Numbered from the stretch's first letter, positions 36,589-48,703 are shown. The stretch is DNA of 64,000 nt from Bugula neritina (GCA_964035545.1 OZ037770.1:10932463-10996462), one strand, 5' to 3'. The notes: generated by a model from the sequence alone, not told the origin. Numbers and translations are program-made.

Positions 36589-37868
36589 TTAGCCGTTAAC
36601 TTCAATGGCTATGATTTCGACATCAGAAGAACTGTTTTCGGTTCGTTTCAGGAAAAATGGAATAGCCACTTGTGCAACATCTTTCAGAGTAAGGTCCTCA
36701 ACCTGACGGGAGAGCCAAGATCGACGATATCTAGTTCGGCGTTCTGAAAGTACATTATCACACTGTTTATGCAGCTTATAAGTTATAAAGTATACCATTA
36801 ATGGCTGTGGTTTCACTCGTTTAAAATTAATAATTAAAGAGTATTTTAAAAATTTGAAGATAGATTCACAAATTAATTTAAAAAACTTACTTAGTTATTA
36901 GAAATTGTAGTTTCACTAACAAAATTCAATTAAAATTTTTAGTTCATCAAAATTAGCATAAAGTAAGATTGGTTGCATTTTGCCATTCTAAGCTTGTTTA
37001 TATCAAATTAATAGAAGACTAACCAGTTAGTGGTGCTTGTTGATATGCCACAGCTCTCTTGTACCCGTTGAAACAAAACTCTTCAGCTTCCCTTGGAATG
37101 AGACTGCTGCCTTCTTCTAAGTCATCCAGAACTCGAAGTAAATACTTGCGTGCTTTGACCTGGTATCCAGGACTCCCGTACTTCAAATAGTTAAACAACC
37201 GGTCTCCTTCTTCAGCTGTTTCATGGAGTTTTGTTACATAACAAACTCCGTTCTTAACAACTTGAGCCACGTGAACATTCTATGTAAAACGGAAAAAGAG
37301 ATTTTAATGTCTTTAATAAGCAAAAAATATAAGAAGGAGTTATAAATAGTGAGACCAACACTTTTTACTATCTGTTTCACCTTGTAGTAAGCTTGCACAC
37401 TTTTTGTCTTGTTTTCCATATTTTCAACTACAGCAACCTTTCTATCCTCATCATAACCTACATTTACAAGGGTGGAGCCTCCCTAAAATTAATATGTTTA
37501 TCAAATATAATAATATGAGATATAACATGATGCATTATAAAGTGATTCAATTATATATATATATATATATATATATATATATATGATGATCGTAGCTCGC
37601 ACTACGTGAAACAATATTGTAGTCAATAGAATGAAGATCTAAGTTTATTTTTATATCCAAAATTGTATCAGTACCAAATATATATATATATATATATATA
37701 TATATATATATATATATATATATATATATATATATATATTGACTAACTCACCTCTGACAATGCAGCTTTAACGTATTCTCCATAACTATGATGACAAAGT
37801 TGAGAGAAGACAACTACCACCAGAACGAGCACCTGCCATTTACCTGTACTAGCCAGTGAGTGGTTCAT
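36589..37868 (-). CDS. BRICHOS-like precursor, paralogue A (signal peptide, BRICHOS-like domain, RYRR, 24-aa peptide, KR, acidic tail)
   Basis: Exons are 37868-37752 ([30 protein letters not shown]..), 37482-37381, 37279-37024 (GVCYVTKL ... EAEEFC) and ~36815-36589. The last acceptor is uncertain. A non-coding first exon lies at ~38490-38412. Confidence 0.7.
37584..37630 (+). ncRNA. 5'-truncated type I hammerhead ribozyme (Penelope-like remnant) in a (TA)n tract
   Basis: (C)TGATGA-T-CGTAG/CTACG-T-GAAA-CAATATTG-TA. It lacks the first C of the core and the 5' strand of stem I. Confidence 0.6.
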
Positions 37869-38507
37869 CTACAGTAGGAGAAATATTTTTATACTTGGAC
37901 GTTTCAATATTTATATTGCAAACAAAAATATATTGTTTTAATATTTTTGAACTAGGAATGGTATAACTGCAAGTCACTTAATACTATGTGATACTGTGTG
38001 ACAGTATATGCAAGCTATAATTTGATGAAATTAGATATTCATTAATTTACAATTTATGAGACTTTTCCAGTAACCTTACTTCCACTTCATTGGTTTAATG
38101 ATCTGATAAAAATTTCAATTGTTTTTAATTTTATAAAACAGCTGAGAATCTAAGGTAAATTTAGTCATTTTAAATCTGTATCATAAAGTTATCACAAAAG
38201 CATTTTGGAGGCAATTAATCTTTATAATGCCTTGCCCCAAATTCAGTAGATTTGATTTTTATCAAAAAAAAAGCTAATTTTGAAATTACACAGTCAGCAT
38301 ATATAAAAACAGTATTGAAAATTGTTGATTGAGTTCAATCACACAATAAACTTATTTTAAATATTTATAGTTGTATGAAAGCAGCCAGCTTGCAAAAAGA
38401 ATGGTACCAACCTTCAAGTAGTTGCAAAACCCAGTAGTTTGTACAAATTGCCCTTGTATCAGTATATAAGCATTCAACTGAATGATGCAGGGCTTCAGCT
38501 ACAAGCG

Positions 38508-38516
38508 CTTTTATAG
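38508..38516 (-). promoter_or_regulatory. TATA box of BRICHOS paralogue A
   Basis: CTATAAAAG on the minus strand, at the position equivalent to the TATAAATA upstream of paralogue B. Confidence 0.55.
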
Positions 38517-45476: not shown

Positions 45477-45681
45477 TTATAAATAGGTATACGAGAAACA
45501 TTGTTGATTTATTACTTTATTAGGTAAAGTAATTACACTAATATTTCGGGTACCACTGTACCCATCTTCAGAGTAGCATTGCTACTCTGAAGATGGGTAC
45601 AGTGGTACCCGAAATATTAGTGTAATTACTTTACCTAATAAAGTAATAAATCAACAATGTTTCTCGTATACCTATTTATAA
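45477..45681. mobile_element. Perfect palindrome (102-bp arms) carrying a minimal hammerhead ribozyme on each strand; Penelope-like inverted pLTR remnant
   Basis: Centre at 45579. The core is CTGAAGA(45587)-T-GGGTAC/GTACCC-GAAA-TATT-AGT, with stem I ACT/AGT + TTGC/GTAA. It is embedded in (TA)n. Confidence 0.8.
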
Positions 45682-46752
45682 TCAAATTGCTAGCTCGTAA
45701 AGATATATATATATACATATACATATACATATATATATACATATACATATATATATAAATATATATATATTTATATATATATATATATATATATACATAT
45801 ATATATATATATATATATATATATATATATATATATACATATATATATATATATATATATATACATATATATATATATATATATATATATATATATATAT
45901 ATATATATATATATATATATATATATATATATATATATATATATATATATATATGGGTATGGGTATGAAAACATCTCAATCTACAGCTGCTGTCTCTTGC
46001 CATAGACAGAGTATCAAATAAATAATTATCATATTCGTGCACCATTTCGAAAAAAAGTTACTCTTCTGATAGCTAGTGCTCATCTGCTGAAAGTTGGAGA
46101 GAAAAGTCCTGTTTAGAGAACACCTTTAGCGTATCAAGATAACTACAAAAATATATTCAAATATTTTTGTGGAAGTCAGAGGTTTTAGAATTTGTGCTTT
46201 GAAACTTGTGCCATTAAATAGTGTGAACATTTCAACACTGGACTTAATTGAGAAGAAACATTGAATTAATTGATAATCCCTGCGTAATGTTTTATGCTCT
46301 TCCATTGAAATTATGGTAAAGATTGTTATCCTATGTAAGTACATTGTCCGGAAATAAATACAACAACTATAATATATGCATCAGCAATTATTCAGAACCA
46401 GTTGAATTGATGCATGCAAGCTTGACTGGAATACTTTGCTATTAATGAAGAGAAGAGAAGATATATTACCGCTAAAGAATAGATTTTCATCAGCTAAAAA
46501 AAGTTTAATTGAAATATGTATTTTATTTATTGAAAAAACAAGCAGTTGTAATTTGGAAGTTTTTTATAACTCCAAATTATTTATGTTAATACAAAAATAG
46601 TGCAAAAGAAGATGTTGGTTTAGGAAAAACTTGAAGAAATATATATGCATTGCTAGCAAGTATTAAAAATGTCAAGTATCATTATATAAAAGTAAGAAGC
46701 TTGTTAAGACAACTTTTTAGAAGAGTTACAATGAGTTTGCCTGATCGAGCTG

Positions 46753-48703
46753 TTACTTAGTAACTTCGATGGCAATTATCTCTACATCAGAAGAAGTAGG
46801 TGTTGAAGGAGCTCGAACACGTAAACCAAAATCAGGAAAGGGTGGTGCTGGAGTCCAGCGTGGTATTGGAGGCAAGGGTGGTAATGGAGGCAATCGTACT
46901 GAAGGCAATCGTATTTGAGGAATTCGTACTGGAGGAAATCGTACTGGAGGAAATCGTACTGGAGGAATTTGTATTGAAGGCAAGCGAAAACCCCCAATGC
47001 TGAAACGTCGGATTCTTTTCTGACTTTCTGCAAATACATCATCACAAAATTGTTTACACACTTTATAAACTGTAACATTGCTGGCAGCAGTTTACAAAAT
47101 TAAATAGCTCCACCCTTGACCATGGAGTCGTATTGCTAAATTTTATTTGATTGTAATGTAAATAAAAAGTTAGTTATATAGCAAAACCATGAGTTTAATC
47201 TTAAGCTGATTTATATATAATAGAAAAACTCTACTCAGCTAATGGTGCTTGTTGAACCACCACAATACATATTTAAAAATCCTATAACTAAATTTCATTT
47301 AAACTTTTGGTAAATAGAAAAAGTGTCATATAAAGCTTGGTCTATTTTGCAATCGTGTGCTTTTTTATATAGAATTGAAAAATACTAACCAATTGCAGGT
47401 CTGAGTGGAACTGCCTTTGCTCTCTTATACCCTTTAAAGCAAAACTCTTCAGCTTCTCTTGGAATGAGACTGCTGCCTTCTTCTATGTCATCCAGAACGC
47501 GGAGTGAATACTTGCGTGCGTTAACTTGATAATCAGAACTCTCGTCATTCAAGTACTTATCCAACCATTTTCCTTTTTCAGCTGTTTCATGGAGTTTTGT
47601 GACGTAGCAAACTCCAGTCTCGGGATCTTGAGCCACGTGGACATTCTACATGAAAAAAAAACTGGTTTAGATTTTTCATACTATAGAAAAATCTGTAAAA
47701 AAGTGTATAAATAGTACAAACACCAAAATTCCCTATTATTTGCTTCACCTTGTAGTAATCTTGCACGTTTTTTGTGCCATCTTCAAACACACAAGTGGCG
47801 ACATTTCTCTTCTCATCATACTTTACATCTACAATGATGGAGCCTCCCTAAAATAAACAAAGATGTGTGTCTATATATATATATATATATATATATTAGA
47901 AGAAGTAAAATGAGATTTGATTAATATAATGGCATTTATTACTAGTAGTTTCGTACACAAGAACGATGTGCACTCGTCAGATAAATTAGCCACTATCTTC
48001 TGGCTAATTTATCTGACGAGTGCACATCGTTCTTGTGTACGAAACTACTAGTAATAAATGCCATTATATTAATCAAATCTCATTTTACTTCTTCTAATGT
48101 TTACGCTCTAGATTTATTTCTATAGAGCACTCTAGTAACGTTTTATAAACACTCATTTTACTATATATATATATATATATATATATATATATATATGTAT
48201 ATATATGTATATATATATATATATATATATACATATATATATATACATATATATATATACATATATATATATACATATATATATATATATATATATATAT
48301 ATATATATATATATATATATATATATATATATATATATTATATATTATATATTATATATTATATATTATATATTATATATTATATATTATATATTATATA
48401 TTATATATTATATATTATATATTATATATGTATAAATACATACACCTCAATTGCTCTTGGTATTTGTGATTTTTCATATTATATCAATTTGAAATAAAAT
48501 TTACCTGAAATTTAGGCGTTTCAGTTATCATAATTAAAGCTGATTGAAAGTTCTTGAACAGCTAGTTTAGCTTTTGACTAACCTACCTGTGACAGTGTAG
48601 CTTCAATGTATTCTCCATAACCATGATGACAAAGTTGCGAGAAGACAACTACTATCGAAATGAGCACCTGCCAATACCCTCTACCAGCCTGAGACCGCTT
48701 CAT
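46753..48703 (-). CDS. BRICHOS-like precursor, paralogue B (262 aa) with Pro/Arg-rich C-terminal peptide
   Basis: Exons are 48703-48587 (signal peptide), 47847-47749 (..KNVQDYYK), 47645-47390 ([18 protein letters not shown] ... EAEEFC) and 47069-46753, all GT-AG and in phase. KRIRR precedes [29 protein letters not shown]... A non-coding first exon lies at ~48985-48910. Confidence 0.8.
47895..48098. mobile_element. Perfect inverted repeat (98-bp arms, 8-nt spacer) carrying type I hammerhead ribozymes; Penelope-like remnant
   Basis: ATTTAT-CTGACGA(48013)-GTGCACA/TGTGTAC-GAAAC-TACTA-GTA^ATAAAT: complete core, stem I ATTTAT/ATAAAT and a GUA cleavage triplet. Flanked by (TA)n. Confidence 0.85.

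Follow-up and report, generated by a model that had tools for sequence, protein, structure and literature searches.

A 64,000-nucleotide stretch of genomic DNA from the bryozoan Bugula neritina (GCA_964035545.1 OZ037770.1:10932463-10996462; here called the window, with positions counted from its first letter) carries two genes, A and B, that are intact tandem paralogues on the minus strand and appear to encode secreted proproteins with a BRICHOS-like carrier domain. Gene A (36589-38481) specifies a product of 209 amino acids (aa), and gene B (46753-48974) specifies one of 248 aa. As proposed in an earlier, sequence-only reading of this DNA, the pair shares one exon structure: a putative non-coding exon is followed by coding exons of 117, 102 (A) or 99 (B), and 256 nucleotides (nt) and by a last exon. 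Every intron is bounded by GT-AG, and the phases run 0/0/1. The coding exons occupy 37752-37868, 37381-37482, 37024-37279 and 36589-36743 in gene A, and 48587-48703, 47749-47847, 47390-47645 and 46753-47027 in gene B. Coding exon 1 of each gene encodes a signal-peptide-like N-terminus, which in gene A is homologous to the membrane anchor of another B. neritina protein, P0035; the hydrophobic segment is short in both genes (~15 residues) and reads as a cleavable signal peptide. Coding exon 3 of gene A contains the core of the BRICHOS-like domain with its two conserved Cys. Both genes are held in a tandem duplication of ~10.4 kilobases (kb), within which the exon blocks are 80-82% identical and another conserved block lies upstream. 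Candidate AATAAA signals stand 191 nt (A) and 222 nt (B) past the stop codons, which is weak evidence in an AT-rich genome. Spliced A and B proteins were assembled for translation, for ratios of non-synonymous to synonymous substitution (dN/dS), for payload statistics and for local BLASTP searches against seven stored proteins.

Repeats are found both within and between the two genes. In intron 2, the first to interrupt the coding sequence, long (TA)n microsatellites occupy corresponding positions of A (37560-37740) and B (48162-48442). Between the genes lies an inverted repeat (40310-40948 and 44599-45238) whose arms are 92-98% complementary and whose pattern of open reading frames (ORFs) suggests a total length of ~0.9 kb. 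It encloses ~3.6 kb that include a 39-nt minisatellite of ~15 copies (43151-43748). Part of the arm recurs at 50472-50624, and the element is possibly a foldback-type mobile element.

The upstream block aligns in A, B, a neighbouring gene C and contig L017, displaying in each case CCAAT, TATAAA and, ~30 nt downstream, an initiator-like (Inr-like) CATTCA(G/T)TT, followed after ~65-70 nt by an AAG/GT donor. In gene A this core promoter (38476-38559, minus strand) comprises CCAAT at 38559-38555, TATAAA at 38515-38510 and the Inr-like CATTCAGTT at 38484-38476, and the conserved block is also a direct repeat. The counterpart in gene B (48969-49043, minus strand) has CCAAT at 49043-49039, TATAAA at 49008-49003 and an Inr-like element at 48977-48969. 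Conservation and the donor site point to a non-coding exon 1 at 38412-38481 in gene A, with an approximate start and its donor at 38412/38411, and at 48909-48974 in gene B, with its donor at 48909/48908; the latter lies beyond the range covered by the sequence-only reading. In both genes the ATG sits directly behind the next acceptor. The non-coding first exon that had been postulated is thus a prediction well supported by conservation across A, B, C and L017.

The family extends beyond the window. Searching the genome with exon 3 identified seven loci, of which A, B and two further genes, C and D, share one contig, while one lies on a second contig and two on a third. Genes C and D are encoded on the strand opposite to A and B, 10-20 kb past the window end, and tblastn with exon pieces added a weaker copy (E) on contig L009. 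The genes on the other two contigs are membrane-anchored and correspond, nearly identically, to the B. neritina proteins P0034 and P0035, whose C-termini consist of a KR site, a short spacer and a beta-prone stretch. Spliced A and B match P0035 and P0034 at 55-67 bits (55-60 bits for P0035; E 1e-13 to 1e-17 in the seven-sequence set) over nearly the entire carrier, including the N-terminal hydrophobic segment.

Relatives elsewhere are few. An exon-3 profile returned only 31 matches among 1.84 billion representative proteins, and a scan of metagenome contigs with the same profile yielded no confirmed locus. A wider profile recovered the Watersipora subatra proteins P0006, P0032 and P0033 (anchor, domain, KR and a Cys-rich C-terminus), B. 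neritina proteins and several exon-sized ORFs on contigs from JGI. Related JGI contigs, reached via the contigs encoding these ORFs, carry five further members (L015/L016, L017, L018, L019 and L020; samples 3300002729 and 3300003318) and, judging by divergence, appear to derive from a sibling Bugula lineage. Eight members (A, B, C, L015, L017, L018, L019 and L020) were compared in what follows. Further paralogues, which the sequence-only reading had suggested looking for, do exist, with at least three types of payload among them.

Two of the members show irregularities. In this assembly, exon 3 of gene C measures 260 instead of 256 nt, with 4 nt inserted close to its end (L012:3322-3351, corresponding to G000:C6 ~11007321-11007350, outside the window). 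The frame is shifted as a result, and a TGA arises where exons 3 and 4 join; L018, the counterpart of gene C, is intact, and the insertion is an assembly error or else a pseudogene allele. In L020 (1-200) the sequence found where coding exon 2 should lie shows strong divergence, only 16 residues are left of the payload, and this member may be decaying.

The last exon has a common order in all eight members: it opens with a multibasic site and continues with a variable payload, which a basic residue or site separates from a spacer rich in Ser, Thr and Pro and an acidic tail with the motif EI(I/T)AIE(V/I/L). The multibasic site stands after the domain, at the start of the exon, and reads RTR(F/Y/N)RR, KRIRR or RRRR. 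In gene A it is RRTRYRR (36721-36743), followed by a payload of 24 aa (36649-36720) with a net charge of -1 and a hydrophobic C-terminal half, a KR site (36648-36643) and an acidic tail of 17 aa (36642-36592), with the stop codon closing this end of the exon at 36589 (36589-36648). Gene B has KRIRR (47005-47027), a payload of 61 aa (46822-47004) with a charge of +6, 33% Pro, 11% Arg and repeated PPVRF-like units, an RVR site (46821-46813) and an acidic tail of 19 aa (46812-46756), with the stop codon at the end of this segment (46753-46821). All of these features lie on the minus strand. The furin sites RYRR and RIRR, the two payloads and the near-identical 11-residue tail in A and B are present just as the sequence-only reading had described them. 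Its second basic site also exists in both genes, but is weak across the family, with KR in A, RVR or RAR in B, L015 and L017, and a single Arg in C, L018, L019 and L020.

At least three payload types, all free of Cys, occur among the eight members. The SW-type (A and L019) measures 21-24 aa and has a charge of 0 or -1; the Pro/Arg-repeat type (B, L015 and L017) is 33-71 aa long and carries +5 to +12; and the hydrophobic type rich in Phe and Arg, or FR (C and L018), is 26-31 aa long with +5. The payload of L020 is a truncated remnant of the Pro/Arg-type, with 16 aa and +4. A furin-type or dibasic site follows the domain in 8/8 members and a cationic peptide (+4 to +12) follows in 6/8, as in known antimicrobial-peptide (AMP) precursors of the BRICHOS kind, the exceptions being A (-1) and L019 (0). 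Net charge is -1 to -4 in the tails; the carrier has -2 in A and -6 in B. The two payloads had been taken to be unrelated. The view that they are wholly so is rejected in light of their homologous flanks and of the kin that either type has on contigs from another Bugula sample.

Selection acts unevenly along these proteins. Carrier exons 2-3 evolve with dN/dS of 0.20-0.51 at dS of 0.12-0.50. Over the last 12 codons of the tail, dS ranges from 0.77 to saturated in most pairs and dN from 0.04 to 0.23; between A and B, dS is saturated there and dN is 0.15, and the nine-codon tail core DVEIIAIEV shows five synonymous changes and 0 replacements. Payloads yield dN/dS of 0.84 (B versus L015) and 1.17 (C versus L018). 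The carrier and the tail are therefore constrained, the tail strongly, while the payload changes at or above the neutral rate with its charge and composition retained. Chance ORFs are ruled out for A and B by conserved splice sites and by purifying selection, seen as dN/dS of 0.2-0.5 in exons 2-3 and as low dN at saturated dS in the tail; the pattern of selection is that of functional coding genes.

Cassette exchange between carriers and payload modules is real, because the trees of the two parts conflict and intron 3 of gene B harbours a fossil exon-3 end. The conflict is plainest in L015. Its exon 2, intron 2 and exon 3 are 85, 78 and 90% identical to those of A and 75, 65 and 79% identical to those of B, whereas its intron 3, exon 4 and 3' untranslated region (3' UTR) are 57, 58 and 61% identical to A and 78, 76 and 74% identical to B. 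A maximum-likelihood tree of the 5' module (exon 2 to exon 3) unites A and L015 with support of 100/100. The tree of the 3' module (intron 3 to 3' UTR) groups B, L015 and L020 (95/95) and divides A, L019, C and L018 from L017, B, L015 and L020 (99/99). Approximately unbiased (AU) tests against the opposite groupings gave p = 4.9e-6, 1.5e-4, 1e-82, 1.5e-3 and 3.4e-5, values to be read with the qualification that the groups were chosen after the trees were seen and that the 3' alignment is rich in indels. Genes C and L018 are congruent throughout, from 81% identity in the 3' UTR to 94% in exon 3, and so set the baseline divergence between the two sources.

The fossil lies at 47232-47262 (minus strand) in intron 3 of gene B and repeats the final ~25 nt of exon 3 with the donor GT mutated; behind it the beginning of intron 3 is repeated as well, and intron 3 of L015 shows the same arrangement. 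Its core motif has two matches in the window, at the real exon-3 end of A and in intron 3 of B (47236-47254), against 0 expected. Together with the tree conflict, it points to at least two events at the exon 3/intron 3 junction. The first would have been a ~150-nt duplication of the junction in the Pro/Arg-type module, and a later one an exchange with its breakpoint at the start of intron 3. The conserved carrier with a swappable last-exon payload, which the sequence-only reading had derived from two genes, is in this way supported across the family by incongruent module trees (AU p 1.5e-3 to 1e-82) and a fossil exon end.

These observations are best explained by a family of tandem BRICHOS-like proproteins under selection, each built from a signal peptide, a carrier, a cut site, and a variable payload with a conserved tail, the A/B subfamily being secreted and very divergent and found here only in Bugula DNA; the chances that this whole account is correct seem a little better than even. 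The signal peptide would be cleavable and derived from the membrane anchor of the older paralogues, and exons 2-3 would form the chaperone-like domain. In the secretory pathway, a proprotein convertase may cut after RxRR. The tail would be the usual beta-prone C-terminal client of BRICHOS, and tail and acidic carrier together may hold a cationic or aggregation-prone payload soluble and inert until its release. Comparison with P0034 and P0035 suggests how such a payload came about: the short spacer that links KR site and beta-prone end in these two would have been expanded. Cationic payloads, that is, those of B and of the C, L015, L017 and L018 types, may then act as host-defence peptides. A tandem, recombining family of variable copy number, with cationic, fast-evolving payloads and acidic pro-parts, fits host defence for B, C, L015, L017 and L018 and fits it poorly for A. 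By its charge and Pro content the payload of gene B looks antimicrobial. That of gene A does not fit a cationic antimicrobial peptide because its net charge is -1, and with its neutral hydrophobic payload and lost Asp this gene probably has a different or weakened role. A fuller version, in which carriers and payloads are re-paired at intron 3 in a defence-peptide cassette system, the tail docks and masks the payload until a two-step processing by convertases, and the Pro/Arg repeats form a new AMP family, is rather unlikely.

Several findings weigh against the defence interpretation. Payload dN/dS near 1 is equally compatible with an unconstrained spacer, the second cut site is a single Arg in four of the eight members, and gene A combines a neutral to anionic payload with the loss of the conserved Asp. 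Moreover, the payload of gene B matched no sequence among PDB chains (at least 20 residues; the library has ribosome entries with bound proline-rich peptides, for example 9ham with Api137) and no ESM Atlas cluster in a feature-based search. Some of these points lead to the strongest alternative, a BRICHOS-like proprotein whose product is not antimicrobial. Its functional element would be the conserved tail, or else the C-terminal region as a whole in a structural, adhesive, amyloid-type or signalling role, and the payload would be a fast-evolving spacer constrained only in composition. It is the tail, after all, that is the most constrained part, and the older P0034 and P0035 do with a short spacer between KR and the beta-prone end; the payloads of A and L019 lack a positive charge, the second site is weak in half of the members, and BRICHOS proproteins of any function generally have a beta-prone C-terminal region (PMC10745061). 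A mere spacer, however, would hardly be expected to stay at +4 to +12 in 6/8 members despite rapid change, or to be separated from the tail by a basic residue or site in every case, and a tandem, recombining, copy-number-variable arrangement is typical of immune-effector families. A non-antimicrobial product is considered somewhat unlikely.

Whether the carrier is a BRICHOS domain at all was examined by sequence and by structure. The hallmark of BRICHOS is one conserved Asp and two conserved Cys that form a disulphide (PMC9627735). In single BRICHOS domains the Asp position is occupied by Asp in 97% and by Asn in 2.7%, with Glu or Ser in the remaining 0.3% (PMC9627735). Among 27 aligned family members the two Cys are invariant. 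Coding exon 2 of gene B ends in VQDYYK and keeps the Asp, as do C and L015-L019, whereas exon 2 of gene A ends in VQAYYK with Ala in its place, so that the hallmark motif attributed to the pair holds for B and fails in A. The Asp precedes the first Cys by 16 residues, as it does in Bri2. The proteins also have the architecture of a BRICHOS proprotein, with anchor or signal, linker, domain and C-terminal beta-prone region, the V/I-rich tail of A and B matching the beta-prone ends of P0034 and P0035 in position. In UniRef, P0034 and P0035 are labelled 'BRICHOS domain-containing'.

Structural comparison was based on an AlphaFold model of P0035 (residues 47-209; 25-row alignment; predicted local distance difference test (pLDDT) score 77.8, predicted template-modelling (TM) score 0.73). 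Its top three rows in the ESM Atlas are all BRICHOS clusters (mollusc, ITM2 and OAF/BRICHOS), with TM scores of 0.63-0.65 over 135-143 residues and the next row at 0.45. Against 48,161 PDB representatives, VIA-align placed the Bri2 BRICHOS chain 8rnu_A second (Z 5.6, root-mean-square deviation (rmsd) 7.7, 87 residues aligned) and the proSP-C BRICHOS chain 2yad_A fourth (Z 5.3, rmsd 3.4, 68/77 aligned), at Z scores tied with LolA/LolB and polo-box folds. Exon 3 of gene B modelled alone gives beta-beta-alpha-beta-beta-alpha-beta (pLDDT 71), where the order b1-b2-a1-b3-b4-a2-b5, with two helices flanking a central beta-sheet, is expected of BRICHOS.

The direct tests are less favourable. The gathering score of Pfam PF04089 is 25 bits, and this profile found no match at E<=10 on single exons of A or B. 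On full-length kin it matched in the right place at 13-14.6 bits (P0034, E 0.04; P0032, E 0.056; P0011, E 0.12), that is, below threshold, and scanning all six frames of the genome produced one irrelevant weak match and none at the family loci. PF04089, the profile suggested for checking the carrier, thus stayed below threshold in single exons, full-length kin and the six-frame genome translation. A family profile found no relative among PDB sequences. Foldseek against PDB detected no significant match to the P0035 model, the best being non-BRICHOS chains at E 0.05 with BRICHOS chains at ranks 36 and 48, and the exon-3 fragment of B, aligned with VIA-align, reached at best Z 3.3 and matched no BRICHOS chain. 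All of this, together with VIA-align Z scores of only 5.3-5.6 that LolA/LolB and polo-box folds equal, speaks for an unrelated small alpha/beta domain whose likeness to BRICHOS (one Asp, two Cys and the order of strands and helices) is convergent or too weak to be meaningful. Yet the three top ESM Atlas rows are separated by a clear gap from the next, both PDB BRICHOS representatives fall within the top 4 of 48,161, BRICHOS is the recurring sub-threshold Pfam match in the right place in three different members, the Asp-to-Cys spacing is that of Bri2, and the sequence of anchor or signal, domain, furin site and beta-prone C-terminus is that of the BRICHOS family. Convergence of this kind is quite improbable.

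The carrier is therefore regarded as a divergent BRICHOS-like domain, an assignment that the P0035 model makes well supported for the family and that is indirect for A and B. The label is chosen because PF04089 is marginal by sequence, the P0035 model matches BRICHOS, and A and B are homologous to P0035. The BRICHOS domain of the sequence-only reading stands in this weakened form, with the P0035 match in its favour and the sub-threshold Pfam scores and unmatched exon-3 model against it. Docking of the tail on the BRICHOS sheet, as had also been proposed, is plausible: the C-terminal beta-prone stretch forms a strand in the P0035 model (residues 152-162), though a weak one, at a pLDDT of ~48-59. 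Least probable of all is the notion that one or both genes are unexpressed, decaying duplicates whose common layout reflects recent duplication instead of function, for although a 5.8-billion-protein collection returned no full-length protein of the A/B/C type, neighbouring gene C is frameshifted in this assembly, and gene A has lost its Asp and has an atypical payload, the frames of A and B are open, their GT-AG sites intact and their promoter blocks conserved, and both the dN/dS of 0.2-0.5 at dS of 0.2-0.5 and the purely synonymous changes in the tail core, with dN of 0.15 at saturated dS over the last 12 codons of the tail, indicate continued selection.

The closest known systems are the BRICHOS-related AMP precursors of polychaetes (arenicin, alvinellacin, nicomicin, capitellacin and HfBRI), which likewise have a signal or anchor, a BRICHOS-type domain in an acidic pro-region, a dibasic furin-type site and a diverse C-terminal peptide. 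In annelids, BRICHOS and a dibasic site precede diverse C-terminal antimicrobial peptides (PMC10745061). For instance, Heteromastus filiformis has 13 precursors with nine peptide families behind a Lys/Arg-Arg site (PMC10745061), and a single polychaete species may have numerous payload families on similar carriers (PMC10745061; PMC6265681). The Bugula proteins differ in several respects. They belong to a different phylum, Bryozoa, and their domain is too divergent for Pfam. In polychaetes the payload ends the protein, whereas in Bugula it precedes another basic residue or site and then the conserved tail, which is acidic and beta-prone. The Bugula payloads are Cys-free (Pro/Arg repeats, FR-hydrophobic and SW-type), and exchange of modules is documented at the DNA level. 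Literature searches brought up no paper that reports either BRICHOS peptides or gene-encoded antimicrobial peptides from bryozoans.

Type II membrane proproteins of the Bri2/ITM2B kind resemble the older P0034 and P0035, in which an N-terminal anchor likewise precedes the domain, with a KR site and a short beta-prone peptide at the C-terminus. With the ITM2 cluster, the P0035 model has a TM score of 0.65. In contrast, A and B have a signal-like segment of ~15 residues and a long payload inserted between cut site and tail. In structural alignments with solved BRICHOS chains, the identity of the P0035 model is only 10-13%.

Cathelicidins offer an analogy of design only: their first exons encode a conserved pro-domain, and their last exon encodes the mature peptide, which is hypervariable. 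Their cathelin fold is cystatin-like, and the peptide is strictly C-terminal and freed by elastase-type proteases; Bac5, Bac7 and PR-39 are Pro/Arg-rich examples. The cathelicidin-like design seen by the sequence-only reading, a conserved carrier with a swappable last-exon payload, is upheld as a likeness in layout without homology. Membership of the cathelicidins themselves was rejected, as the exons have no Pfam cathelicidin match and the carrier is homologous to BRICHOS-like paralogues. Proline-rich AMPs are recognised by high Pro and Arg contents, PRP-type motifs and an intracellular target, the ribosome or DnaK. The payload of gene B resembles them in its Pro content, regularly spaced Arg, PPxRF/PxxR repeats and linear, Cys-free form, and differs from these peptides in its low share of Arg, its charge of just +6 over 61 aa, and its lack of a PDB or ESM Atlas match.

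If the proposed BRICHOS-like proproteins do carry defence peptides, an AMP design described so far from marine worms would reach a second lophotrochozoan phylum and would include new Cys-free peptide classes, one of them of Pro/Arg repeats. The conserved tail beside a variable payload would also constitute a natural test of how BRICHOS handles its clients. The conflict between the module trees, together with the relic of exon 3 inside intron 3, is direct DNA-level evidence for the way in which such a family of carriers and payloads diversifies. Should the peptides be non-antimicrobial, the family would still represent an undescribed, fast-evolving group of secreted BRICHOS-like proteins.

The window has other features besides the gene pair. 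On the minus strand, 23650-24507 contains an open frame of 285 aa with ~10 tandem units of 15 residues, each ending in Gly and flanked by Lys-Arg, which corresponds to a 45-nt repeat at 23739-24141. Its layout is that of a multi-copy precursor of amidated neuropeptides, and it has no meaningful Pfam match. At 56813-60187 lies a satellite with a 30-nt unit, ~110 copies and a strongly negative GC skew. Fragments of a non-LTR (long terminal repeat) retrotransposon occur at 54561-55349 (minus strand) and 55899-56411 (plus strand), both broken by (TA)n arrays, the first matching RVT_1 at E 5.7e-6. Finally, an open frame at 1456-1932 (minus strand), the end of which weakly matches a SAND domain (E 7.8e-4), is probably an exon of an unrelated gene.

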